The notes below the pieces were generated by a model. The model worked only from the letters and a program-made list of their open reading frames with translations. It made no database searches and was not told the DNA's origin. Both the position numbers and the translations under genes were made by a program. Of a DNA stretch of 42,955 nucleotides, positions 960 through 41,636 are shown one piece after another (within the stretch, counting starts at the first letter, position 1; each line of letters starts with the position of its first letter). This stretch comes from Octopus bimaculoides. Its lineage: Eukaryota. The stretch spans positions 94,384,780-94,427,734 of the forward strand of contig NC_068984.1 of assembly GCF_001194135.2 (NCBI RefSeq), in the 5' to 3' direction.

Positions 960-1971
960 ATGTCTGAAAAGAAACAATCAAGTGGGACTGAAGGTAATTG
1001 TGCATAAAAGAATTGTAAAAGGATTATGCGGCATATTAAACTTGGTGTGGGAAAAAAATTATCCATACTGCTAAAACATAATATTAAGAACAATATGTGA
1101 TAACAGAGTGAAAATTAAATGCTCAAGAATCTACTCCATTAACTGCTCAAACATTATTTTATCACATAACTAATGTGGTGCTTAAATTGGAATGCCGTGT
1201 GTGTGGATCACGGATCACATTTGACATAATATGCAAAGTAATTAAAAACAAAGCCAAAAGTTTGCATGGCAATTTGCATAAAAGGGAAAGTGGAACTTCT
1301 AATGAAAACCCTTTCCTGACAAAATCTGGTTCAAAAGGTTCAAGAAAAGCTTAAATTTGTACAACATAAAAATGGCTGGTGAAGCTGCCATTGTTGATAT
1401 AGAGGCTGCTACTAATTATCCTGAGCATTGCTGAAGGAGGCAACATTAGGGAAACAATATAACGTACTTTTCTTGAAGTACATGAATGCTAGAACTGTTA
1501 TTTCTCATGAACAAAAATCAAAACCAAGGATTTACAACTTTAAAAATTGTAAAAGGATTTACAGCTTTAAAAACTGCCTGATGCTCTTGTATCACTCCAA
1601 AATTTCAAGGCCTTTCAAGAACTTTGCAAAGTTTAATCTACCTCTGAGTTGGCATTCAAATAAGGCATGAATAACTAAGAACCTTTTCAAAGAGTGATTT
1701 AGAAACATCTTTTGTTCAGCTGTAGTCAGGTAAGTGCCAGATATGATATTTTCAACAAAACATTGCTCCTTTTAGACAATACACCAATTCACCCAATGAG
1801 CTTTTTGATAATGTGAGAACAGAATATATCCTCAGGAATACAACTTCCTTGCTCCAGCCAATGGACCAAAGTGTGAAAGCTCACTTCCAGGCATACTATT
1901 TGAGAAGAACCTCCAAACAATTTATAAAGCAATCAACAGAGAAAATAAATGATGTAACTGAACTGCTAGTG
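960..1971 (+). mobile_element. Tigger/pogo-like (TIGD1-type) transposase relic, 5' part
   Basis: Manual translation gives WFKRFKKSLNLYNIKMAGEAAIVDIEAATNYPE (~1327-1425), WHSNKA*ITKNLFKE*F, LLLLDNTPIHP, NTTSLLQPMDQSVKAHFQAYYLRRT and DVTELL, all typical Tigger/pogo DDD motifs. The frame has many stops and frameshifts; the left boundary is approximate. Confidence 0.85.
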
Positions 1972-1996
1972 CACATTGTGCCCAGATTGGCTAATT
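1972..1996 (+). repeat. Left TIR of the RAG1-like element (CACATTGTGCCCAGATTGGCTAATT)
   Basis: Matches the reverse complement of 5481-5502 with a 2-nt indel and a few substitutions. The first 7 nt differ from CACAGTG at one position. Confidence 0.8.
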
Positions 1997-2561
1997 CAAG
2001 AAAAAAATCATATCCCATGTGGTTAAAAATGATTATCTGGTAGGGGCTTTGAAGGGTTCCTCATTTACTCCATTCCCCCCCCCCCTTCTTTTGAGGATTT
2101 GATTTGACTTGCACTTACATCACCCAGCAATGATTTTGTACTCTCTGAAAATTAATTTCCAAAACCAAAATTGAAATTCAGCACTTTGTTGTGTCCATTT
2201 GTCCAACTGCCCAACTTCCTGTTTCAGTTTCACTTTCTTTGTACAGTCTGTCATGTTGCTGATACAGCACTTTTTCCTCACTTGTTTGGTACTTCACTTT
2301 CATATTGGTCATTCTCTTAAAGCTGTTATCAATTGCTGTTGTGTGCCTGCATTCTGTTTGCTTGTTTTTGAAGTATGTGTGCCTCAACAGTGATACTGAA
2401 TCATTACAAGATATTTGGGCCAATTGCCATGGGTTGTTGCAGTTTCATCTGTTTGGGTTGTTCTTTTGACTGGTTTGCATTTGTTTTCTCTAATTTGAGC
2501 TCAGGGTGACAAAGCCAATTTTATGCTGGTGTATTTTCTTTAGGTAGAAAATCAATTCAAA

Positions 2562-4586
2562 ATGAAGTGGAATAACAAAGAAGCATTAGAACTATTTCTT
2601 GTTTATACCAAGCACTTGCCTAAAAACAAAAAAGAAGGGCAAGAAATGTGATGAAGCGGCAAACATGTTCATAGAGAATCTTCCAAAGCTACCCCCAGAC
2701 CATAGGTGCATCAGCATGAAATTCTTGAGAATGTTGGATTCAAAACCTGGTAACAGGAGTTCTCAAAATGATGTGTCTAAATGGAAGATTTTGGTTTTCT
2801 TTGAGCATGTTCAAGCATCAGATTAAACAAAGAAACCAAGAACCAGACCAAGTGTAACCCTTGGTGATGCACCTTGTTTGAAAAAAACAAGGTCGATTTT
2901 GAAAGATGTGATTTGTTGGGTAGAACAATTTACTGAGGAACAGAATGTAACAAAAAAAGTTGCTCTGCAAACAGTAGTCGATGAATGCAATTGGACTTGG
3001 CATTCCTCTGTTAAGTCAACAAAATGCTCAATTCCTGTTGACAATGCAGTAGCATTAATATATAATGTTAATCTTTCAATGCATCAATATCAAATGATTA
3101 GGACATTGTGTCTCCTGCATGGTGTGGTATTCCTGACCAGAAACGAAGTAGATTGCAAAAAAAAGAAGTTTCATACTACTATGTTATCATACTACTACAG
3201 TTATCAATTGAAATCATTGGCGACATAACTAAGTTAATCGATGAAACAGCTGCATCATTGATTAAATTGAGTGAAACTAAACCAAATCATGAAGAAGGCA
3301 GTTACCACTTAATAAGAAAGTTTGGTGTGGATAGATCAGGATCTCACCAGGAGTTGATCAACACTTCTTTTGCAACAGAAGAAACTGCATATCTTGATCC
3401 AACAAAGAGTAATTCTTTTGTGTTGTCCTGTAACTGTCTCCTTCAGTTGTGCTACAACGACACTGTTCTTTAGACAAACCCAGTGTCAAACAGCACCAGT
3501 TTTGCATGCCCTGTGTCACTTACCAGATGTGTTGAAGAATGAGATGTTCTTGCTGTTGAACTTGAACCATCTTTTGAAGTTATAAAGGATGTCTATCAGT
3601 CAAATATTCTTCTTGGTGACAAAACTATCACTGTACATTGCAAAACAGAGTGCTCAATAGTTGATGGTAAAATGGTCTCCCTACTTCAAGTGGGGCATTC
3701 TGTCATCTGTGTCATACATTGTGAGCTACTGCGAACAACATTGGAGTGAAATCTGAAGGTTATGGTATTACCAAGGACTATGCTTTTTGCAATACAGCAT
3801 GGGAGAAGCTGTCAGCTGGGGACATTTTCTATTTGAGTAGATAGACACAAGGACAATGTCATGAGAACATCATCAAAGCTGATCTTTTTTGTTTTTCTGT
3901 TCTTCACTTTAAGTTGCGATCATTGGATTTTGCACAGCAAATTCTCTACCACCTTGTTAGCAGTCAGAAGATCTGGAGTGAGACAGCAAACCTTAATGTG
4001 ATGTAATTTGTAGGTCGAGCCAAAAAATAATGCATTGATGATATCCATTCCAGTACTGGAATCTTAGTGGATTCACCATGTCATTCAGGGGCGGGGCACC
4101 AATACTGGTCCCCTGGCTGATTGGTTCTTAATGCAACAAAGAAGGTGTAAGTTGATGTGTTGAAGTCACTGGGCATAGAGCTGATGATGCACATGAAGAA
4201 CGCATTCCTTAACAAGAAGGGGCAACCTTGGGTGATGTTCATTCCATCTTTCCACTAAATGTGTGTGCATAGCTGGCAGCTCTTTGAGTTAATTGAGTTA
4301 ATCAATTGCTAAATGGAGTGAGAGTCCAGTGGAAAGTTGGAATAAACATGTAAGGTCATTTCCAAGTGGTCCTTCTGCAAGATGTTGCCAGCTTTCAATC
4401 AAGGATAACATCCATGATATCTTCAGAAGAATGTCCATCATGTCACATCCAGCAATTGCTTCAAAACATCCCAGCCCAAGTTGTTCTGTTTGTGGTGAAG
4501 TTGGTCACACAGTTCGTTCTTCAAAACATAAGAAGGTGTCTGCTTTGTCAGAAGAACAATCAAGAATCGAATCACTATATTGCTAA
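2562..4586 (+). pseudogene. RAG1-core-like DDE transposase pseudogene
   Basis: Segments in order: RPSVTLGDAPCLKKTRSILKDVICWVEQF (NBD-like); AVALIYNVNLSMHQYQMIR (cf. RAG1 LAIRVNTFLSCSQY); KFGVD (D1, 3330-3332); L*TNPVSNSTSFACPV (cf. Transib WxNPxPSSTxYCRP); SIVDGKM (D2, 3663-3665); AFCHLC (3701-3712); SVLH (3905); TNTGPLAD; PSFH*MCVH (4253, 4268); WSESPVESWNK (E, 4332-4334); CSVCGEVGH (4482-4508). There are several stops and frameshifts, and the start at ATG 2562 is tentative. Confidence 0.88.
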
Positions 4587-5480
4587 CTGGCCCATGTTAT
4601 GCATATTTATTGTTTGGCATTGCTGTTTCAATATTTGTTGTGAATAATAAGTGATCAGTTTTCACAATTTAGAGCAAATGATTCTGATTTTCTTTGTGAA
4701 TCATGGGGGGGGGGGGNNNNNNNNNNNNNNNNNNNNNNNNNNNNNNNNNNNNNNNNNNNNNNNNNNNNNNNNNNNNNNNNNNNNNNNNNNNNNNNNNNNN
4801 NNNNNNNNNNNNNNNNNNNNNNNNNNNNNNNNNNNNNNNNNNNNNNNNNNNNNNNNNNNNNNNNNNNNNNNNNNNNNNNNNNNNNNNNNNNNNNNNNNNN
4901 NNNNNNNNNNNNNNNNNNNNNNNNNNNNNNNNNNNNNNNNNNNNNNNNNNNNNNNNNNNNNNNNNNNNNNNNNNNNNNNNNNNNNNNNNNNNNNNNNNNN
5001 NNNNNNNNNNNNNNNNNNNNNNNNNNNNNNNNNNNNNNNNNNNNNNNNNNNNNNNNNNNNNNNNNNTTAATATGTCAAAATTTGTCATTTAAAAAAAAAA
5101 TTATCAAGTTTGAGGGGGTTTTACCAAAAATTTGGATATTTCTATCAAAAACTTAAATTTTTCATGCATCTCCAATTTTCTCAAATTTATGTTGGCCTAT
5201 GCACTCTAGGCTGTAGCTTGACTGAAAAACAATAAAAAATGCTCCTAAATAAGTTCAAACAGAGGTTTAAAATCTTTTTTGTAAAAGAAAATATGTTCAA
5301 TCTTATTGATACTAAAAAAAAAAAACCGTAAATTTTGTTAAATTGGCCCAACTTTAAAGAGCTATAAAAATTGAACCATACATTATTTTAAACTTAGGTT
5401 TTTTGTTTTATAATTTCCTGAGTTTAGAGAACCAGAAAATTTGCAGTTTAAACATCTGGGGGAAACTTCAAAAGATGATA

Positions 5481-5502
5481 AATTCCTACTCTGGGCAGTG
5501 TG
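5481..5502 (-). repeat. Right TIR of the RAG1-like element (reverse complement CACACTGCCCAGAGTAGGAATT)
   Basis: Inverted match to 1972-1996, followed directly by TAGAG at 5503-5507. Confidence 0.8.
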
Positions 5503-6160
5503 TAGAGTCTCACTGAGAATGTTTATCTAACAAAGAGTTGATGCTGTTAGAACAAGAACTAAGAATACAAATAAGAATATAGAAACTCCACCAACTTCAC
5601 TTAAATTGACAAAAAGAATATTGTTAAAGGGTTGGCATTTATAGACAAAGGTCTGCAAGTTTTTGATGATAACACCCCTTAATCATGAACATAACAAAAA
5701 TTACAATGAGCTCAGTTGCTACACTGAGCTGTACAAAGGGATGATACACTATAAACATCAAACAACTTTGGATAAGTTCTTCATACCTGAAGTAGACACT
5801 GATGATGATGATGATGAGACAGAAGACAGTGTCTCTCATCATCCCAGTAATGCTCATTCCACCACTACCCCTCTCGCAGTAGTCAATATATTTTGTGGTA
5901 AGAACACACCCTGTTACAATATTACAATTCTTATTTATTCCTTTATGTATTAGTTTTCAAATGTTCCTATGCATACATGTACTGTGTATGTTTAGAAATT
6001 ATTAATTTCATTCATAAAAGTGGTCATCTAGCCCCCCCCCCCCAAAAAAAAATTGTTAGAACACATCTCACTTAATACATGAAAATCAATGGGAAAAGTA
6101 ATTTCAGATTATAGTAAGATATTTAGGAACAAGTTACTTCCATAAAATGAGGAATAGCTG
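5503..6160 (+). mobile_element. Tigger/pogo-like relic, 3' part
   Basis: Reads (L)ESH*ECLSNKELMLLEQE, continuing DVTELL from before 1972, and later HQTTLDKFF, typical of the Tigger C-terminus. The right end is approximate. Confidence 0.8.
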
Positions 6161-7629: not shown

Positions 7630-8285
7630 CAGGGTGCAGTGAATAAACTGTCATCTAAATTATACAAAAGTGAAAATAACACTGACATCTCATTTTAATA
7701 GATGTACTTACCAAAATTACATAAAAATATCTTGAAATACTAAAGAGTAAATTTATTCAATAAAATCACCATAGGATTCAATCATGGCCTCAAGATGACT
7801 TCAGAATCTCCTGCAACTCTTCTGGACAGTCTCCTTGTTTAAGCTGGTGAATGCTGCCATAATCCTTGCCTTCAGTTCAGTTTTGGTGTTACAAGGAGTT
7901 TTGTTGGTCTCTCATTCAACTGCGCTCCACACATAATAATCAAAGAGGTTGCAGTCTGAGGAATTAGGTGGTCAGATGTTTGGGGTAAGATGGTCGCAGA
8001 AATTTGTCTGAAAGCCATTACTGGGTTCTCCTACTTGTGTGGTATGGTACAGAGTTCTGTTGCTAGACATAGGGTCTTCCAGCAGCCACCCTCTTGACCC
8101 ACAACAGCACTACTTGATGTCGGCCTCTGTGTTGAGTTTGAGGCCATGTGGGAAGATGAATGAAGGCATAAAGTCACCATCACTAGTGATCACTCCAAAC
8201 ACCATGATGTTGACTGGATGTTTGATTCTTATCACTCTCAGTACATGTTTTGGGGACACAGCAAGCCAATGGTTGTTCCGTGTGT
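7630..8285 (-). mobile_element. Tc1/mariner transposon relic, probably DD37D (maT-like), 3' half plus terminus
   Basis: Minus-strand translation gives NNHWLAVSPKHVLRVIRIKHPVNIMVFGVITSDGDFMPSFIFPHGLKLNTEA, a decayed QQD-equivalent region, then TPNI*PPNSSDCNLFDYYVWSAVE. It ends at TA|CAGGGTG on the + strand. The DD37D spacing is estimated from a decayed copy. Confidence 0.8.
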
Positions 8286-9946
8286 TCACATTGGGAGTTT
8301 GTAGCTTTTTGAAAGTGGTGTGGTGATGGGTAAAATTCTTAAAGATTCAAACTCTCTGATTTTTCTCCATGGATTGCCAAGAAAAAGAATTTGAAAAAAG
8401 TAAAAAATGAATTTGGTGTGGAGAGGGAGAAGATCAAAATATTGAGAATGTATTGTGTGGGTAAAATCTTAATCTTCTATATTACAAACATAGGAATTGG
8501 AAGAAATTTAGGAAAAAAATAAGGGTGGGGCACAAATGTCACCTCGGACATGCTGGAAAGAAGAGGTAAAGGACAGGATTTCTGGGAAAACTTCCTTTCA
8601 AGTTTATATCAAAAATCAGGTTTTTGAATACACTCATCACAAACACAAATTACACAATAGGAAAAAGGTCATTTCAAATGAATTTGACCTATAAATTTGT
8701 GCATGCACACAGCAAGAAATAGCAATTCGTACAGAAGTTTTACCGTGTGTGTGTGTGTGTGNNNNNNNNNNNNNNNNNNNNNNNNNNNNNNNNNNNNNNN
8801 NNNNNNNNNNNNNNNNNNNNNNNNNNNNNNNNNNNNNNNNNNNNNNNNNNNNNNNNNNNNNNNNNNNNNNNNNNNNNNNNNNNNNNNNNNNNNNNNNNNN
8901 NNNNNNNNNNNNNNNNNNNNNNNNNNNNNNNNNNNNNNNNNNNNNNNNNNNNNNNNNNNNNNNNNNNNNNNNNNNNNNNNNNNNNNNNNNNNNNNNNNNN
9001 NNNNNNNNNNNNNNNNNNNNNNNNNNNNNNNNNNNNNNNNNNNNNNNNNNNNNNTCGTTTGAAGATGCAAAGTTGTCAGCTCGGTCATATGGGATCATAT
9101 GATTGTTCGTTAATTTCCGTAAAATTTTTTTTACTTCTTTATGCTTTGAAGAGAGCAGAAATTGAAAGAGAGAAGAGTGTAAAAGCTGTATGTATGTGTA
9201 TATGAAATGGGTGTATGTGTGTGAGGGTAAGAGAGTGAGTGTGTGAGTGGAGGTGTGTGTTGTGATGTATGAATTTTTTTGCATGTACATTTAAGTGGCA
9301 CTCACTCTCTCACACATTATGTTTCATATACACATACATAAATGCATATACATACATTTTTTTTTGTGCATGTGCATCAGAGAGAGGGAGAGAGAGTGAG
9401 TGACTGTATTTCCTTATAACATTCAGAGAAATGGAGGTCTTAATGCAATTTTTTTGGTTGTGGCTTATTTTAATACAATATTTATGCGTACATTTTCATA
9501 AATGTTTGTCTGAGTAGAATTCTACGCATGTGTGAAACATAGGATGAAAGTGAAACATTAGAAGCAAACTGAAATATTGCCCAAAAATTACCTTAAAACT
9601 GTGCGACCTTACCTTGTTTCTGAGGTTATTTTAGTAGTGAAAAGAGTTGTTGTGCCAAAAACATAATTTATTTGGTAGATAGATGATAAGCAGCTTTCTT
9701 TAGTATAGTACAGATGTGACTAATTCGGAGAAACATTACTTTCATTACTTTCATCGTCACTCTCGTAATCCAATACTTTGTAATTTTGGTTCAAACTGAA
9801 AGTGTGAAACTATTTTCACTTTCTAATGAAACCTGGTTGTTGTAGAGCAGTGTATTTCAAATACCTATAGCTGGTTGTTGAGATAATGTAGAAAATATGT
9901 AAATGAAAATAAAGTTTATTTGACATGAGTAACTGATTTGATTGCT

Positions 9947-11599: not shown

Positions 11600-14100
11600 A
11601 AAAACTCTCTTTCCAAGCATCCCTGTCATCTCAACATCTCCCCAGCCAAATTCTCGGCCCTTTAATCTCTCCGATGCTGCACTGACATCATTATAAAACC
11701 AGCCGACAAGGGTGGAGCCGTGGTGGTATGGTGTGCGGACCTCTACAAGGTCGAAGCTCTCCGCCAACTTCAAGACACCTCCTTCTACTGCCCTCTGCCC
11801 TATGACCCAATGCCCACCTACCAACAGACTGTGTCCTCCACTATCCATGACCTCATCTCCTCCCCCGTCTGCCCCCACCGCCTCCAACCTCATTGTCTGC
11901 ACCCCCACCATTTACTTCCTCCCCAAAATCCACAAACCTAACAACTCTGGCCGCCTCACTGAGCTTATCTCCAAATATCTTGACTGTATCCTTGCCCCCC
12001 CTAGTGGCTTCTCTCTCTTCTCAGATCCATGACATCAACCACGTGCTTCGTTTGTTCAACTCTTTCTCCTTCCCTCCTGGCCCCTCTAAACTTCTCTTCA
12101 CTATCGACATCCAGAGCCTTTACACAGTGATCCCTCACCACGAGGGGCTGTGTGCACTCAAACATTTCCTTGGCCTCCGACCCAACCTCCAGCCTGACAC
12201 CTCTACACTCGTTCATCTGGCCGAACTTGTCCTCTCACTTAATTGCTTCTTGTTCGCGGGCAATTTCTACCAGCAGCTCTCAAGAGTGGCCATGGGAATG
12301 AGAATGGGCCCCAACTATGCGAACCTATTCATTTGGCTATGTTGAGGCCCAAATATTCTCAAGTTTCACTGGTTCCACTCCCAAATTATATGGCCGTTAT
12401 ATTGATGACTGTATCGGTGCAACCTCACTCTCCCGCGAACATCTAGACTCCTTTCTCTCTTTTGTCAAATCGTTCCATCCTGCCCTCCACTTCTCCTGCA
12501 CTATCTCTGACACCTCTGTCTCCTTTCTTGACATTTCGGTCAGCATTAATCACTCCACTCTTACCACCTCCATCCACTACAAACACACAGACTCACACTC
12601 ATACCTCAACTTCTCCTCCTCCCACCCTAAACACACCAAGCTTTCCATCCCCTATTCCCAATTCCTCCATCTACGCAGGCTCTGTAGTGACGACCATGAC
12701 TTTGAGACTCAGTCTCAACTCATGGCTCACCATTTCATCCTAGTTGGATATCCCCCTCACCACTATCCACACTGCCCTTGCCAGAGCATGTCCCCGAACC
12801 CGCCCTGCCATCTCCCACCTCCCTTTTCCCCTCACCTACCACCCCACCATCCTACCTCTCCAATGCACCATTCTCTGAGCTTTCCAGCGTCTCCAGTCCA
12901 ACCCCTCCATTTCACACATCTTCCCTAACCGACCCCTCCCCTCCTTCAAACAAGCCCACAACCTATGAGACCTCTTAGTCCACAGCTTCTTCCCCAATCC
13001 AACCCAACCTCCCAACCTGCCTCGTTTCCCTGCTCTCACCCACAATGCCGCACTTGCCCATACCTTTCCAACACCACCCTCCTCACAGGCATCCATCATT
13101 GACCCTATCACATCACTGACTCCTTGACCTGCACTTCTACCAATATCATCTATTGCATCTCCTGTTCTCTCTGCCATTCTCTGTACATCAGACAAACGGG
13201 ACACCGCTTGGCTAACCAGTTCGTGGAACACCTTAGAGACATCCGCCTCGGCAATGACACCCCAGTCACCGGTCACTCTTTGCAACACCTGTCCGTGTTC
13301 GGATTGTCCTTGCACAAGGGCCATCTGGACTCCCGTTTGCACCATGAACAGGGATTAATCTTCTGTCTTCGCTCCTTTGCACCACATGGGCTCAACTCTC
13401 CTCCTTTTGCCTCTCTCCCCCTCCCTCCTACTTCCTCCCACCTATCTCTCCTCTCTTGCTCCAACTCCTACTTCTCTTCACACCTACCCCTACTCTCTTT
13501 CGCTCTTCTCTCATACTCACCTTCCCCTTCCTCGTCAGCCCTCCCTCATGAGCCCACTCCACCCCTACACATTCCTACCCCACCTTCCTCATCCCATCCC
13601 TTACACCCTCTCCTACATACCCTACCTCTAACCCCACCCACTGCCTACCCACATACCCCCACCCCCACCCGTGCATTCCCCACCTCCCAACATCACGCAC
13701 ACACCAGCACTGACCAATCCCCATCCCCACATCTTCACACCTACATATACACACACGCACACGTCAAGATCACCATCCCTCTTTCACACGCACATACATA
13801 CTCGCTCACACACGCGTGCACCTTCGTTTTGGGATCACTATTACTTTGTTATCTTCCCTTCTTCTTAGCTCTCCTGTATGACCCTTCTGTTCGGCATTCG
13901 CCATGATAGATCGCTAACCACTACACACATTTCTTTTCTCTGCTTGTTTCTCTCTTTGTTTCTTTCTGTGTTCCTTTCTGTTGAACAGCATAGGCTCGAA
14001 ACGTTAAAGACTTTTCCAATTCCCAAACGTTATACTAATATATCTGTGTGTTTTCTACACCACCTGTCTTTGTCCTTTGTTTTTCTTGTGAATTCTCCCT
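11600..14100 (+). mobile_element. Penelope-like retroelement (Neptune-type), 5'-truncated, RT plus GIY-YIG
   Basis: Motifs IIKPADKGGAVVVW, YFLPKIHKP, LFTIDIQSLYT, GMRMGPNYANLF, YGRYIDD, FLDI and SSSHPKH; a Cys linker PCSHPQCRTC; endonuclease NIIYCISCSLCHSLYIRQT. It is frameshifted and has a pyrimidine-rich 3' region. Confidence 0.88.
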
Positions 14101-16443: not shown

Positions 16444-17319
16444 ATGCAATGTCCTCCGTTTCGCTTATTGGATTTGCTTGAAATCAGCCGTGACCAGGAC
16501 CATCTAATTGAATGGCTGAAAACATATGGACTTTTAGCAGAAGCTCATGTCTGTGACTGTGGCCACAATTGTTCGTTTGTGAAATTTTCGTGACTTCAAG
16601 ATGGGTATAGTTGGAAGTGCACTGCTTGACAGTGGCGAAAACGCTTTTCCATTAGAAAAGGATCGTTTTTCCAAAATAGTAATTTATCTTTAAGAACAAT
16701 ACTGCTCTTTCTGTATTGGTGGTCCATTGATGAACCCTTGCAGAAAATTATGCATGAGCTAAAAATTGCGAATTGGTCCACTGTAGTGGATTGGGCCAAT
16801 TTCTGCCGAGATATTCTGGCACAACACCTAATTGATAATCCATTAATGATTGGCGGCCCTGATGTCGTGGTTGCCATTGATGAGTCTAAATTTATGCACC
16901 GAAAGTATCGGCGGGGTGCGCACTATGACGGCACTTGGGTGTTGGGTGGGATTCAATTGGACAATCCCACCAATTGCTTCTTATCTATATGCTCGGATAA
17001 TAGCCGGTCCATGGATTCCTTGGAATCCATTATCCGGCAACATGTCCGTCCAGGGAGCATCATTTTCACAGATGAATGGGCACGTTATCGTAATTTGCAG
17101 CAGCAAGGGTTCCTGCATTTAACGGTAAACCACTCAGTTTCATTTGTTGATGAAGCCACAGGTGTACACACAAATCATGTAGATGGAATGTGGGCGCATG
17201 CTAAGTGCAAATATCGGCAACTTTATGATACTTCAACCGAGTTGTTTTCCACGTATTTAATAGAATTCATGTGGCGGAAGAGGTACTCCACTAGACAATT
17301 TGAGCAATACACATTTTAA
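16444..17319 (+). pseudogene. Merlin DDE transposase, full length, two in-frame TGA stops
   Basis: MQCPPFRLLDL...CDCGH...[26 protein letters not shown]...[10 protein letters not shown]...WVLGGI...[11 protein letters not shown]...HLTVNHS...[12 protein letters not shown] 16444 is in frame with the 16738 ORF. Confidence 0.92.
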
Positions 17320-30329: not shown

Positions 30330-31059
30330 AGTTTAATTACTATTTTATGACTCAAGTGTGGATGTGATATATCTCAACTTTGTAAAAGCCTTTGATAAAG
30401 TTGACCATGGTATGATATGTCACAAATTGCATGATCTCGGCATAGTTGGAAAACTTGGAGAGTGGCTACATGACTTTCTAAGAGATAGATGTGGCAGTGA
30501 TGGCCAATGGAGCCACCTCAAAGGAAACACCAATAGCAAGTGGTGTTCCACATGGCATTGTCTTAGGGCCACTGCTATTCATATTGGCCCTTTCAGATAT
30601 GCCCTCAGCCCCTCAGATAGCCACCCTCATTAGCTATACAGATGACACAAAAGTTTATCAGACAATTCAAAACCCAGGAAACATTGCAAATCTGCAACAG
30701 GAGTTGGATGCATTATACAGTTGGGCTGAGGACAACAATATGCTGTTTAATGTAAGAAAATTCCAAGTCCTGTGCTACCAGTACACAAAGCTGAATGACA
30801 TGCATACAGGATACACTGGCCCAAGAGGAATTGCAATCACTGAATCAAAATCAGTGCGTGACCTGGGCATTGACATGAGTAATGACATGAGGTTAGATGA
30901 TGGGGGTGGTGTTTCCAAAGGGCTGGCATGGGCAACCTCATCACCTCTGCCGATCAAACTCCCAACCCATGCTCTCCCATCGCGACACTGATACTGCAGA
31001 ACTGGGTTGGGTGTGAAAACCAACTTTAAAGTATAAATATAGATGTTTTTGAATCAGCA

Positions 31060-35869: not shown

Positions 35870-37550
35870 TTGTTACCTTTGTTTACCTACCAATGCAAGT
35901 GTTCGATCCAGTGACCTGTGATTACTATTGATTTAGTAAACAGAGTGGAAGACTCCTTTGAAAGCAAAGGAGTTGATGTGGAGCTCTTAGGTCCATAAGC
36001 TCGCTTCATAAGATGGTAAAACATTTTGCTGTCATTTGCATCAGCAGCAGCCTGAACATCACAAGCAAGATCCTCTCACTAAGTGTTCTGCATCTTCCTG
36101 AGAGATCGCTGCAGTAGTGATTTTACACTGCTATAGTGGGCAAGTGCTAGACTTCGCTGCACAATAGACAGTTCTCTGTGTAGCAATACATTGTGGGCAT
36201 GGCACTTTACCATCCATAGTCGCTGAACTTCAGCATCATTTTCATCAAACCAGTCTCTGTGTCTGGCAGTAGCATATCCCAGTATTTCAGCTGCACATTG
36301 AAGAACCTGGTCTTGAAAAATCTTCCCATGCTGCAGTATTTTCAATGCTGGACAAGCGAGTCTGAAGCTCTTTCCTAACCACAACATCATATACCTTGTG
36401 GACATTTAGATGGCAAGGAATGCTGACTGGTCCTCTTCTCTCTTTCACTCTAATCATCATTTGGAACTTTGCTTGCACCAGACTATGGTCCGTCCAGCAT
36501 TCCGATCCATGAAAGGACTTGACATTACAAATGTCATAGATGTCGCACTTGCAGATGATAACATAATTCAGCAAGTGCCAAACTTCAGACTTTGGATGCA
36601 TCCACATTGTTGTGTGATTACCTTTGTGCATAAAATGAGTGCTTGCGATGTAAAGTTCATGTTCTTCGCAAAGCTCCAGTAGCATGAGACCGTTGCTATT
36701 CATTTTCCCTACTCAAAAACGTCCTACAGATTTCCATGTTTGCCAGTCTGTTCCAACCCTGGCATTAAAATTCCCCAGTAGAATGACTTTATCAGAATTG
36801 GGGATTTTTCTAAGTATGGCTCTCAGCTGGGTATAAAAGATTGTTTTATCTTCATAACAGCTAGTCAAAGTAGGTGCATAGGCACTTATTAGAGTAGCAA
36901 ACTGCCTACCTTTCAAGCGCAACCGTAGAGTCATTATACATTCATTTATAGGAACAGGGAGCTCTTCCAGCTTCTTAAGGATATCAGATTGAACTGTTAA
37001 ACCAACACCAGCTTTTCTGCACTCCTCCTTCTGCCTTCCCTTCCAAAAAAAGGTGTATCCACCTCCTACTTCCTCAGGATGACCATCACCTGCTATACGA
37101 GTCTCTGAGAGTGCAGCTATATCAATGTTATAACGGTTCAGCTCACGACCAACAAGTGCAGTGCATCTTTCAGGCCTACAATCACTCTTGTTGCCCAACA
37201 GAGTGCGCACATTCCAACAAGAAATGTTTAAGTTCAGTCCAGATTTTATAAATAAAAGACTGTTTTTTGAGCACAGCGTGGACATCCATCATTCGCGCTA
37301 AACTGACCAGATACAGAAAGACAGGCAATTTTTGGTTCACCTTTTCTAAAACCTCCCCGGCCTCCGGGTGAGCAGTGCCCTCTCCAAATGGAGCTGCTCA
37401 GACACCCATGCAGCATCCAAATCCTACCGCTGTCTTGGGCAACATGAGGATGACTATATATCTAGCATGGGCCGCCTACGTGCAGGTCGCTGACTACATG
37501 CGTCCAACCTGTCAGGTCTGCATGCTTCACCACCTTCCCATTGCCGCTTC
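35870..37550 (-). mobile_element. RTE-clade LINE 5' part (APE endonuclease)
   Basis: LNISCWNVRTLL...RPERCTALVGRELNRYNIDIAALSETR...GYTFFWKG...LISAYAPT...ILLGNFNARVG, then NSNGLMLLELC...WMHP...SECWTDH and RHRDWFDENDAEV. Confidence 0.9.
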
Positions 37551-38049
37551 CGAATAAAAAAAATACTAAAGACATATAAATATATACTAAAAATGAAGAA
37601 AATATATATCAAAATAAGATATATATGTACTAAAAATAAGATATATATATCGGGGTAAAAAAAAATGCACATATCAAGCAGAGGTCGGCAATGCCTGTGC
37701 AGAGTTTCAGGTCCAATGAGGATTGCACAACACCTCATAGATCCTATCCACTTTTTTGACATTATCCAGAGACAAGCCAGAGCAAGATGTCTGGTGCCAA
37801 TATGAGTCGCAGGTTCAGAGATGTAGAAGTGCCGTGATCTCTAGCACAAACCAAAGATCCCCAAAATGTTCAATGCCATTCCCTGCATATCTGGTTTTAT
37901 ATCAGAGTGACCTTCTTCAACAGAAGCTGAAGGGTGCCTCACTCCCAATGGTCTTTCAGCACGCCGGACACCATCCTGGAATTTCTGCGTACCCGTGCTA
38001 TTGCTAGATAGCCATTGAGCCTGCACTAGGTCCATCCGAGCTTTCAGAT

Positions 38050-38080
<31 letters not shown>

Positions 38081-38243
38081 AACACACACTCACATATATA
38101 TATATATGCATATATGTATATATATACATATATATATATATATNNNNNNNNNNNNNNNNNNNNNNNNNNNNNNNNNNNNNNNNNNNNNNNNNNNNNNNNN
38201 NNNNNNNNNNNNNNNNNNNNNNNNNNNNNNNNNNNNNNNNNNN

Positions 38244-41200
38244 AGCTTGTCCGGATCGGGGAGACATGTTATACCAGAAAACTGCTTCCAGCGGCGAAAT
38301 GTGCCCTCTTTCCGCTATGGCCTTGATTGTCCAATGGTGTCTCTCTATGATTCCGTTACCGCTCAGCCTATATGCTACTCTGAACAAGCGACGCACTTTC
38401 CACCGGTCTAGCATATCCCTCAACACTTCCAAACGAAACGCCGACCCGATGTCCATTAGCAGTTCTTCTATGGGACCCTTCTCTAAAAATATCCCGTTCA
38501 AAATGTGCGCAATCTCGTCAGCAATGCCCATCTTAACTCCTTCCAAATGGCTATCCGGCCTGCAGTTGACCATGGAGAGATACATTCCCTGATGGCAGTG
38601 CGTCACATCCATGGCTAGTCTCTCCCAGTTGTGCTCCACTGAAAGGTTTCCTTGCTCATGCCCACATGGAGTAGGGTCAATGGACTGGAACCTTTCACAG
38701 CTCCCGACCACTTTCAGGATGCTTCTCCTAGTGACGTCAGCATCAATCAACTTCGCGAGATACAGAGTCCTATCCACCCCCAAGTGATGCATAGCATGTA
38801 GTCTCTTNNNNNNNNNNNNNNNNNNNNNNNNNNNNNNNNNNNNNNNNNNNNNNNNNNNNNNNNNNNNNNNNNNNNNNNNNNNNNNNNNNNNNNNNNNNNN
38901 NNNNNNNNNNNNNNNNNNNNNNNNNNNNNNNNNNNNNNNNNNNNCCGCGGCACCTTTTGTCTGAACTCTCCTCTCACTGGTGATCACCGATCCTACCCAG
39001 GCGAGCACAGTGGCCAAATCCGTCTGGATTTCGATTGAGCGCAGCCCCCATTTCAGGGGTAGTTCACCCCATTCAGCACTGCGTCTAACTTGGCGACATT
39101 GATGTGGTTAAAGTCGTCTGCTTTCCGAAGCCAGGCCAAGTCCTCCACCTCAGCACCTTCGATCTCCAACACAACCCCTATCACTATACTGCTAGCATCA
39201 CACCAAACGGTCCCACATTCCGTCTTGGGCACATACCAGTTCCCCTGACCGGGTCTTCCGCTCTCGTCTTCTCTAGGATTTCCCGCATCATTGCCACCGT
39301 CCCCTCTCCCATCTTGTCAATCCAACTCTCCCCCTCTGCTTGTCTCTTGGCATGCTGTGCACAGCCATCCAGCGATCGGGTAGTGACCTACCAACTTCTC
39401 ACACACCGAGAACAGCTCTCTCCTGCTGACACTGGAACTCAGCTTTGGGATTTTATTTCCTCTCCAGAACACCAACTCAACTGATCTATCTCTTCATAGC
39501 TTCAGCCCCAGTGCAGCTTCCCCCGCCATCGACTCCAGTGGCTTCGCAATCAGCCCGAACTTCTCCAGATGTCTCACTACCTCAGTGGCTGGCACTACAG
39601 TCTCGTCCACCAAAATGTCGTCTATGTAAGAACTGGTGGCCTTTCTTATCTTGTCCTCTTTCCCTAGGATGGACTTGAGCACCATCACCATGATCTTCGG
39701 AGCAGAATTCAGTCTGAAACCCAGCCTGGTTAAACAGTACATCCGGGCCTTGTACCGCACCAGCTGATATCGCCACAGTTTGTCACTCACATGGAGCTGC
39801 AAATATGCCGACTTCAAGTCGACATTCATCACTGCCTTGGTCGACTGTCTCCACACACGTAACGTCTCGCCTCCCGTGTGGAACGATATATGGTCATTCA
39901 GTTCTCTAAAGTCCAGCACCGGTCTGACTTTTCCCTTCGTCGACTGCATCACCGTCATCAGAGGTAGTACTCCGCTCACCACCTCCTCCTTCCACGGGAT
40001 AAGGACTCCTTCCTTGATCCATCTCTCTACCTCGTCTTTGAACTTGACCCTGGCGTGACCTTTCAGGGTACACTGGTAGCACCTCACCCTGTTCTTCAGC
40101 ATTGGGAACTCGTCTTTCCCTTGCCACTCTATCATCCACCGCCGACCATTGAACACCACAAGAAAATCCTTGTCCTCAACGGTGCAAGCAGTGCAGTCCC
40201 TCATGGAGCCCTGCTCTCTCTGGCGAACCTGACTCATAGCACACAACGCTCCCATGCTTCTGAACGTGACCTCATCTCCTCCAATCCTAACACCACCGAG
40301 GCAGTTGATGGCATCCATTCCCATCACCACATCAATCCCGTCTATCACATGTTCGATCACAATTACCTGCAGCCTTAGCATCGCGCCTCACACCGCTATC
40401 TGTACATTGCTGCTGCCCTTGCATCGGATTTCACCACCGTTGACCGCCTGGACGCTACTTGCCCCATTCCATTTCTTCGTCACCCTTGGAGTCATGAGGG
40501 TGGTCGTGCAACCCGTATCCACAAGGGCCTTGAATGTCTTCCCCTCGGCCTCGACATTAATTATGGGCAGCATCTCCACAAGTGCCTCTACTTTGCGGGG
40601 AAAGTTCAAGAGGCAGCAACTTCCCCACGGTCGTTTCCCTGGTCGCAATCACGGGCGATGTGCCCTGTCTGCCTGCATCGATAGCAGACGGGCCCTGGTT
40701 GCATACACTTCCTTGCCATGTGCGACCCCTGACATTTAAAACACCGGCCTGAGAATGGCCGCTGTTGCTGCATGGTAAGCTTCTTTGTGTCTTTCTCCGG
40801 CCGTCATCCGTAATTATGCGCCTCCGTTACCGCCTTCCGTCCAGTGTTTCATGTCAACATGCGAGCTTGAGCTACAAGTTCGCTCAGCGCCATCTTTTTG
40901 CCCCCGGAAAATTGTTGCAGTCGAATCCTCACGTCGTCAGGGAACCCACTTACGAACTGCAGTCGCGTTGCTCTGTCCAGGCCTTCTCCCGTAAACCCAG
41001 TCAGCGTGGTCAGCCTATGCACCTTCGTCGCGTATTCATCCACTTGCTCTCCCATCCATCTAATCGTTCCCAGCTTAACAAAGGCTCTATACTCACACTC
41101 AGTGTAAGCCTCTCTCAGACGTCGCTCAATCTTCTCCTTGCTCAGTCGTTCTTCTTCGTCCATCTTGAGATACAGAGTTAACGTGCTCCCTTCCAAATAT

Positions 41201-41636
41201 AGTGCCATAAGGCTCTCCACGTCGCTAATGCCTTGCAATCTCACCACAAGCCTGATTTTACGCATCCAGGCCACTACATCACCATTAAAGGGCCTGATAA
41301 CGTTGCTGGCGATCCTAATTTTAGCTGCCATCGTGGTGATGTCTTATGTGGAGCGTCAAAATAGCTTGTAGTGAATGCGGGAGATTAGAAGTAAGACACC
41401 TACTTTCTCTTCGCTGGCGCAGAAATGTCGGGTGGTAACGCATCCTTCCAGAAACGCTAAAAATAGCAGCTGCTTTCCCTCACCTTGACGAAGCAGATAC
41501 GTCCTGCACTCACGGCTCCCCCGACCGAAAAGGGCGCAATCTTCCTCGACCAGTGTGCACGTCACTTGTGCGCCCTTCCTCTTCCGGTCAGCTCCCCAGT
41601 TCCAGTCAGTTCCCCAGCCACTGACGTCATCCCATA
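38244..41636 (-). mobile_element. Ty3/Gypsy LTR retrotransposon, decayed, 3' LTR missing
   Basis: Gag at 41331-40849; CCHC knuckle CYRCRQTGHIARDC; protease ALVDTGC; RT RPVLDFRELN, DLKSAYLQ and YIDD (39628-39617); integrase GNGIIERHH. Confidence 0.92.
41367..41636 (-). repeat. Probable 5' LTR of the Gypsy element
   Basis: GC-rich block upstream of gag, bounded on the + strand by TGTAG at 41367 and CCCATA at 41636 (a decayed TG...CA). No canonical PBS was recognised. Confidence 0.55.

Follow-up and report, generated by a model that had tools for sequence, protein, structure and literature searches.

The stretch of DNA analyzed here (42,955 nucleotides from Octopus bimaculoides, contig NC_068984.1; hereafter the window) carries at positions 1972-5502 what is, with high confidence, a single old and inactive autonomous copy of a transposon of the Transib superfamily, a group akin to RAG1, an enzyme of vertebrate immunity. 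This copy is nested in a Tigger/pogo transposon which is older than the Transib insertion and is also dead. Positions are coordinates within the window; the sequence was read directly and the coordinates were re-derived by script. The element is well bounded and of an already known kind, whose principle, including the 12/23-like asymmetry of some Transibs and the RAG1L-like Subgroup I, was published in 2005 and 2022, and ends resembling recombination signal sequences (RSS) together with a 5-bp duplication are already textbook features of Transib (PMC1131882).

Ends of the element and reconstruction of the empty site

By direct reading, the pentamer TAGTG (1967-1971) is followed by the heptamer CACATTG (1972-1978) and by TGCCCAGA. 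At the other side, CAGTGTG (5496-5502), which belongs to CACACTG CCCAGA on the opposite strand, is followed immediately by TAGAG (5503-5507). The element delimited in this way has a length of 3531 bp. Both heptamers are one base away from CACAGTG, the two flanks agree at 4 of 5 bases, and the 5' end shows a single mismatch with CACAGTGTGCCCAG, the end of two related elements described below (L003 and L007). In the 42,955 bases, the pattern CACANTG-N(0-2)-CCCAGA was matched twice, at the two element ends and in inverted orientation, for an expected number of 0.03, and two or more matches were obtained in 0 of 100 shuffled sequences; the ends are therefore real and not due to chance. The use of a gapped pattern was necessary because a 2-base indel hides these ends from an ungapped end scan. 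The features of the insertion site are the following.

1306-1966, forward strand: left part of the host transposase gene, a frameshifted Tigger/pogo fossil whose last residues are ...NDVTELL (tblastn of the Tigger-derived proteins P0034, P0036, P0039 and P0047 covers 1306-1959)
1967-1971, no strand assigned: left copy of the target-site duplication, TAGTG, with 1 mismatch to the right copy
1972-2011, forward strand: 5' terminal inverted repeat, with heptamer CACATTG (1972-1978), conserved TGCCCAGA (1979-1986) and likely second A/T-rich block GAAAAAAATCAT (2000-2011)
5462-5502, reverse strand: 3' terminal inverted repeat, with heptamer CACACTG (5502-5496), CCCAGAGTA (5495-5487) and second block GGAATTTATCAT (5486-5475)
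5503-5507, no strand assigned: right duplication copy, TAGAG, which is the probable original target
5508-5782, forward strand: right part of the Tigger fossil, from SH*ECLSNKELMLLEQE... to ...QTTLDKFF (tblastn of P0034 covers 5549-5782)

Deletion of 1967-5502 restores CTG CTA GAG TCT CAC and a frame ...QSTEKINDVTELLESH*ECLSNKELMLLEQE which includes NDVTELLESH. Excision of the element with 5 bases was the only removal giving both the right Tigger frame and the right length: the frame was broken when the element was removed with 0, 3, 4 or 6 bases, whereas 2 bases gave one residue too many and 8 bases one too few. The rejoined translation aligned over its full length with the Homarus homolog P0034 (43% identity overall, E=2e-73), without gap at the junction (NDVAEFLESHREDLTNEDLMVLEQE), and the alignment with the Myotis homolog (EDVTELLASHGEELSTKDLIQLKQQ) was also ungapped across it. 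The homologs of the rejoined translation are annotated as 'tigger transposable element-derived protein 1-like' and carry the Pfam domains DDE_1 (PF03184) and PF03221, so that the host element, in its translation and in its homologs, is organized as a DDE_1 transposase of the pogo type whose N-terminus is CENP-B-like. The nearest named homologs come from Homarus and Portunus, with 43-47% identity. Besides several frameshifts and stops, the Tigger fossil contains a short internal duplication at 1500-1600 (...RIYNFKNCKRIYSFKNC...).

Of the two pentamers, TAGAG is probably the original target, the left copy having mutated from A to T after insertion, because the lobster homolog has L-E-S-H at the junction, which fits GAG and not GTG. 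Through this nested insertion, the 5-bp duplication is demonstrated cleanly by a natural 'empty site'. An earlier note on this DNA, made from the sequence alone, had described the ends CACATTG and CACACTG, each one base off CACAGTG and followed by CCCAGA, as well as the flanks TAGTG and TAGAG; all were found again at the same positions. Its proposal that excision of the element with one duplication copy restores CTG CTA GAG TCT CAC and the Tigger frame DVTELLESH*ECLSNKELMLLEQE also held, and the contiguity of Tigger at this point, on which it depended, is borne out by the Homarus and Myotis alignments, which are ungapped only when the 5 bases are removed.

The transposase gene

Between the ends lies one degraded open reading frame (ORF), and no RAG2-like partner ORF accompanies it; the element has a single gene, with non-coding flanks of 590 bp and about 916 bp. 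Its features are listed here, NBD standing for nonamer-binding domain.

2562-4586, forward strand: broken Transib transposase gene (tblastn of P0001 residues 1-714), stop codon at 4584-4586
2836-2877, forward strand: NBD-like (G)RP motif, by motif coordinates
4482-4529, forward strand: C-terminal zinc knuckle CSVCGEVGHTVRSSKH, by motif coordinates

The gene has accumulated 8 in-frame stops and no fewer than 6 frameshifts, has lost about 39 codons in one deletion, and is spread over three frames. The catalytic codons are nevertheless readable (D at 3330-3332, D at 3663-3665, E at 4332-4334), and these D, D and E residues are invariant across the homolog family (alignment A1). With the intact relative P0001 (715 aa), tblastn placed residue 1 at 2562 and residue 714 at 4580, and the stitched translation of the window gene is 54% identical to this protein over 700 columns, end to end. 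A homolog search with the stitched translation yielded 33 proteins with lengths of about 700-715 aa. The closest of them has 54% identity over 99% of the query, and 19 of the 33 were used to build the profile A1.

When the profile was compared with the PDB, the Helicoverpa zea Transib (HzTransib, 6pqn) was matched over nearly the whole core with E=4.2e-44 (154.2 bits), followed by the amphioxus RAG1-like protein BbRAG1L (6b40) with E=7e-13 (51 bits) and by vertebrate RAG1 at about 1e-12. The precomputed Pfam domain PF26100 (RAG1_RNase_H) is annotated in several homologs, and P0007 and P0012 reached 23.5 and 24.8 bits against Pfam RAG1, for a cut-off of 25 bits. The AlphaFold model of P0001 (pLDDT 81.9, pTM 0.70) had only HzTransib, RAG1 or RAG1L among its top 49 PDB fold matches, the best being 6pqx with a TM-score of 0.80 (normalised to the target). 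Homology and predicted fold identify the internal gene as a Transib/RAG1-type transposase. The window copy is a fossil, no longer able to make its transposase and damaged at the 3' end.

A NELF-A match of the stitched translation (E=0.04-0.75) was discarded as noise. The Ser of the zinc knuckle was considered as a mutation of the dead copy; this was rejected, since the alignment shows Ser to be typical of the whole clade.

Related elements in public assemblies

Contigs encoding the homologs were taken from public assemblies and scanned for CAC...GTG inverted ends. Five complete elements were obtained.

L002, 4031-8147: duplication CATCT/CATCT
L003, 4518-9524: duplication CATTT/CATTT
L005, 4502-9186: duplication CAAAG/CAAAG
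L006, 4849-9133: duplication ATACG/ATACG
L007, 2018-5973: duplication TAATG/TAATG

Perfect 5-bp duplications were present in all five, with heptamers CACAGTG or CACTGTG at both ends, and in 3 of the 5 the heptamer is followed by TGCCCAG as in the window. A further copy, L004, is 5'-truncated; its protein is 54% identical to that of the window and its 3' end is CACATTGTGCCCAGG, with the heptamer CACATTG. As CACATTG is thus also found at the L004 3' end, it is a natural heptamer variant of the clade and not necessarily a mutation of CACAGTG. Among called genes, the transposase is the only substantial one in L002 and L005, while a 118-aa ORF on the reverse strand and short ORFs of L003 lie outside this comparison. 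Several relatives look intact, among them L002 and L005, with genes of 715 and 714 aa.

The 3' end of the window element aligns base for base with those of L003 (ending at 9524), L004 (ending at 8161) and L009, all of which are 2 bases longer (alignment A2). Compared with L003 and L004, one TG of TGTG has been lost in the window, which shortens TGCCCAG. The '(TG)' by which the two window ends differ in the earlier note is explained by this loss and corresponds to a real 2-base deletion at the 3' end. The boundaries that it had fixed are supported by the relatives, which end at homologous CAC...GTG positions. Its claim of a real transposition with a Transib/RAG-type 5-bp duplication is sustained by the Transib/RAG1 gene inside the element and by the duplications of the five relatives. 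The element's own broken transposase gene, the 2-base 3' loss and the status of CACATTG as a natural variant go beyond that note.

Taken alone, the window copy is compatible with a 5-bp duplication or with a 3-bp TAG duplication and an element start at 1970 (TGCAC...), both leading to the same empty site. CACTA/EnSpm (CMC) elements have CAC ends and a 3-bp duplication, and an insertion of this type would account for flanks that share TAG and differ at position 4. Such an origin is nonetheless extremely unlikely: the encoded protein is of the Transib/RAG1 type and not of the CMC type, the fifth base of the pentamer, G, also matches, and the homologous ends of the five relatives begin at CAC and are bordered by perfect 5-bp duplications, for which reason the 3-bp reading is excluded. 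The insertion is therefore read as a Transib with a 5-bp duplication.

With the profile, 4156 clusters (50%-identity representatives) were detected at E<=1e-3, of which 507 at E<=1e-30. The closest relatives, P0001, P0002 and P0003, lie on contigs of 3.0-3.3 kb in which one or both ends are missing, and a scan of Joint Genome Institute (JGI) metagenome contigs for relatives gave only two short contigs, with no ends. Other repeats were observed in the contigs of L004, L005 and L006. In L004, a tandem array of 33-bp period (CGATAGTGGG...) at 8162-8826 abuts the 3' end of the truncated Transib copy. Nearly perfect internal inverted repeats of at least about 180-260 bp are located between the ends and the gene in L005 (4760-4940 / 8760-8938) and in L006 (5032-5290 / 8683-8941), and an extra inverted pair lies just outside the L005 element (4445-4500 / 9663-9696).

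Two-block architecture of the ends

A second block was located by gapped alignment of the 5' end of each element with its 3' end. In the relatives it is A/T-rich (GGAAACAATTAA in L002, GGAAAAAATACCAAAAAT... in L005, GTGAGAAAAAAT in L007) and shows 11-45 identical bases between the two ends in L002, L005, L006 and L007. Counted from the heptamer, its position at the two ends differs by +9 bp in L002, +10 in L005, -9 in L006 and +10 in L007, and by +9 in L003 as judged by eye. In the window, the 5' end consists of CACATTG, 22 bases and AAAAAAATC, and the 3' end of CACACTG, 10 bases and GAATTTATC. This amounts to a net offset of +12, which would have been about +10 with the 2 lost bases still present; the window blocks (G[GA]AA...ATCAT) are 8/12 identical between the ends, a weak placement with an alternative. 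The end with the long spacer lies 3' of the gene in L006 and 5' of it in L002, L003, L005 and L007. The asymmetric ends thus have no fixed polarity with respect to the gene, L006 being reversed compared with the four others.

An end architecture of this kind is already published: the Transib end consensus is CACAATG followed by a spacer of about 23 bp and by AAAAAAATC, several families having 12/23-like ends (PMC1131882, PMC8355894). Transib is the only group of eukaryotic DNA transposons with a 5-bp duplication (PMC1131882, PMC8355894).

The assembly gap and the 3' non-coding region

The 3' part of the element is interrupted by a run of N.

4717-5066, no strand assigned: assembly gap of 350 N, of estimated length only, in the 3' non-coding part and preceded by a G run
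5067-5461, forward strand: 3' non-coding region, in which a subterminal block at about 5350-5411 is conserved (collinear blastn matches to relatives)

The N run starts 130 bp past the transposase stop codon. No reading frame crosses it, because the stop of the gene precedes the gap and P0001 is aligned up to residue 714 of 715 before it. The 436 bp that follow are non-coding and collinear by blastn with the 3' ends of L009/L010, L003 and L004; the match to L009/L010 consists of three collinear blocks, the best two with E=4.6e-6 and 6.9e-4. In the four-way alignment A2, the mean column identity is 70% and the alignment reaches the last base of the element. From the stop codon to the 3' end, 916 bp are found in the window (the 350 N counted). 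The same distance is 999-1116 bp in L002, L005, L006 and L007, whereas L004 and L009 have about 543-690 bp. If the estimate of 350 bp is roughly right, the gap is too small for a second gene.

A misassembly was considered, in which two Transib copies or loci would be misjoined across the 350 N and no single bounded insertion would exist. The unread gap lies inside the element with a homopolymer G run before it, and assemblies often break at such runs; this run (4706-4716, directly before the gap) likely caused the assembly break. Both sides of the gap are nevertheless assigned to one insertion, because the outer flanks are halves of one Tigger gene and the post-gap sequence is homologous to the relatives. 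The two Tigger halves meet at one codon with a pentamer duplicated at 4 of 5 bases. L003, L004 and L009 are the nearest relatives (52-54% protein identity, homologous 3' ends) of the gene before the gap as well as of the 3' end after it, and the length of the element was judged to fit the relatives' range of 3956-5007 bp. A misjoin is accordingly held to be very improbable.

Other points weigh against the reading of 1972-5502 as one Transib copy. The flank copies differ at 1 of 5 positions. Neither the element nor its ends were found a second time in the window; the element is there in single copy, with no family consensus for it exactly. The bases of the gap, 350 in number, remain unread inside the element. 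Single-sequence Pfam and PDB searches with the stitched pseudogene translation gave no significant match, so that the Transib assignment rests on the intact homologs. The second block of the 5' end has two possible placements, GGCTAATT after 10 bases, which would make this a 'short-spacer' end, or GAAAAAAATCAT after 21. With these points included, the nested Transib insertion keeps the high confidence given above.

Two further observations concern the non-coding parts. A block ...AAAATTGAACC.T..A.TATTTT.A....GTTTTTTG lies about 100-150 bp inside the 3' end, at 5350-5411 in the window, and the same ...AAAATTGAACC...GTTTTTTG block is present at about 9384-9445 in L003, 8018-8080 in L004 and 3147-3210 in L009. 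It is conserved although the proteins of those elements are only 52-54% identical to that of the window, and it may possibly be a signal for transposase binding or transcript processing. In addition to the G run before the gap, the element has a C run at 2075-2085, within its 5' non-coding DNA.

Comparison with Transib and RAG systems

With the Transib superfamily (Kapitonov and Jurka 2003/2005; PMC1131882), the window element and its relatives share a single gene, for a transposase of about 700 aa whose DDE domain resembles the RAG1 core, an autonomous element of 3-4 kb, the 5-bp duplication and many insertions into other transposons. The CAC ends and the RSS-like heptamer are also common to both; a second A-rich block is clear in the relatives, and in the window 5' end it would be AAAAAAATC, the nonamer consensus, after 22 bases. 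In contrast, the heptamers of the window family are CACAGTG, CACTGTG and CACATTG where the insect consensus is CACAATG, and its protein has extra segments absent from classical insect Transibs. Among solved structures, HzTransib (6pqn, 6pqr, 6pqx) is the best match to both the profile and the predicted fold (TM 0.80, 21% identity), and its D-D-E residues and C/H zinc ligands align with those of the family. The window family differs from it by about 34 extra residues after the CHxC zinc motif (profile 400-445 against 242-253 in HzTransib). Its N-terminal region is also longer and bears a GRP motif, and a CCHC-type knuckle is present at the C-terminus.

Transibs have been divided into Subgroups I and II, with HzTransib in Subgroup II (Tao et al. 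2022, PMC9435367). Subgroup I is characterized by asymmetric ends, a zinc-domain segment equivalent to RAG1 alpha11-alpha12 and a CTT1 tail, and is nearer to RAG1L; as some Subgroup II members are also asymmetric, asymmetry is not exclusive to Subgroup I (PMC9435367). Asymmetric ends were found in the window and in L002, L005, L006 and L007. Profile positions 400-445, which correspond to 12 residues in HzTransib, align continuously with BbRAG1L and with MleTransib_3931, and this segment would be the equivalent of RAG1 alpha11-alpha12. The family further shares with Subgroup I the NBD-like GRP motif. A C-terminal knuckle of CTT1/CTT* type followed by V..EE...I.S.Y/F is also seen, in a form that depends on the clade. 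Against MleTransib_3931 (Mnemiopsis, Subgroup I, from the PMC9435367 supplement), the profile scored 204.8 bits, with a match continuous through the zinc-domain segment and the tail, against 154.2 for HzTransib.

The knuckle itself is variable. The CTT* motif is Cx2Cx3GHx4C (PMC7204232), and this exact form is present in P0022-P0026, whereas the knuckle is deleted in P0027-P0029, a sister clade. P0001-P0013 and the window have Cx2Cx3GHx4[S/A/I/F]xxH, in which the last Cys is replaced and a His stands three residues later. The window clade, with Ser, Ala, Ile or Phe for the last Cys, and the sister clade without knuckle both differ on this point from Subgroup I. The host also differs, being neither a ctenophore, Hydra nor a bacterium. 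The supplement of Tao et al. was searched for the motifs of the family, and no near-identical sequence was found in it. By its features and bit scores, the lineage looks like Subgroup I Transibs.

Compared with RAGL/ProtoRAG and vertebrate RAG1, the fold, the catalytic triad and the 5-bp duplication are shared, and the heptamer of the relatives is the RSS consensus CACAGTG. The two-block signal, with spacers differing by about one helical turn, resembles the 12/23 arrangement of the RAG RSS; the spacers of about 8-12 and 17-22 bases are, however, not strictly 12 and 23. The identity with RAG1 in the fold alignment is only about 14-16%, and the window element is devoid of a RAG2-like gene and of the N-terminal RING/ZDD region.

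The element could thus be proposed to be a RAG-like (ProtoRAG/RAGL) transposon with RAG1-like and RAG2-like genes and not a Transib, as heptamer ends, a 5-bp duplication, a Cx2Cx3GHx4C-type knuckle and a zinc-domain segment absent in HzTransib are all shared with RAG1L (PMC7204232). The convergent pair of RAG1-like and RAG2-like genes by which ProtoRAG is defined is not found in the window element, nor was a RING or an N-terminal RAG1 zinc-finger domain found in the homologs. A kelch-repeat RAG2-like protein has, by our estimate, about 350 aa, and the 590-bp and ~916-bp flanks are too small for it. In L002 and L005, the transposase is likewise the sole substantial called gene, and the profile gave 154 bits with HzTransib and 205 with MleTransib_3931, against 51 with BbRAG1L. 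A RAG-like transposon is hardly credible here, and the Transib assignment is preferred.

Proposed history of the insertion

By analogy with known systems, the RAG1-like DDE transposase would have bound both ends through the CAC heptamer at the cut site and the inner A/T-rich block; which protein domain reads which block can be inferred only by the same analogy. As in HzTransib and RAG (6pqn, 6pqx), it would have nicked at the heptamer border, the 3'-OH of the flank then forming a hairpin on the donor and freeing blunt element ends. The 3'-OH ends of the excised element would have been joined to the target at TAGAG, with a 5-bp stagger between the two strands, and gap repair would have duplicated these 5 bp. 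The later decay comprises one substitution in the left duplication, the 2-base 3' loss and, in the gene, the frameshifts (at least 6), the 8 stops and the deletion of about 39 codons.

Other features of the window

The window contains eight assembly gaps and is rich in dead transposons, with an ISXO2-like DDE gene, endonuclease and reverse transcriptase (RT) fragments of long interspersed nuclear elements (LINE) and an element of the long terminal repeat (LTR) type.

16738-17319, forward strand: 193-aa ORF with ISXO2-like transposase domain (PF12762, E=1.4e-19), IS1595-type DNA transposon
30491-30991, forward strand: separate RT fragment (PF00078)
36713-37285, reverse strand: LINE-type endonuclease ORF (PF03372)
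38004-41331, reverse strand: LTR-type retroelement with integrase-like, RT and gag-like ORFs

The RT of the LTR element has its nearest named homologs in Palaemon and Oratosquilla (about 50% identity); for both this RT and Tigger, the nearest named relatives are thus from malacostracan crustaceans. No near-identical protein on record was found for the window Tigger or for the RT of the nearby LTR element. The forward strand at 11900-13900 is GC-rich (~51%) and strongly C-skewed, with overlapping ORFs of 150-260 aa for which no Pfam match was obtained; one of them has a motif that may resemble the GIY-YIG domain of Penelope-like retroelements.

Significance

These results give a firm annotation of this part of the window as two nested dead transposons with exact boundaries, a conclusion unaffected by the gap. 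They also show that public assemblies commonly contain Transibs which combine protein features like those of RAG1L with asymmetric, RSS-like ends made of two blocks. The intact relatives are useful for the question of the origin of V(D)J recombination and can be tested for a 12/23-type pairing preference. We put forward tentatively, as a possibility that we consider rather doubtful, that the window copy is a fossil from an as yet undescribed lineage of animal Transibs of the RAG1L-like 'Subgroup I' type, the intact relatives of which combine CACAGTG, a helical-turn spacer difference, an NBD-like GRP motif and the RAG2-binding zinc-domain segment of RAG1. If this were true, intact relatives such as L002 and L005 would be living models of the pre-RAG2 ancestor, and the age of the 12/23 rule would become testable.

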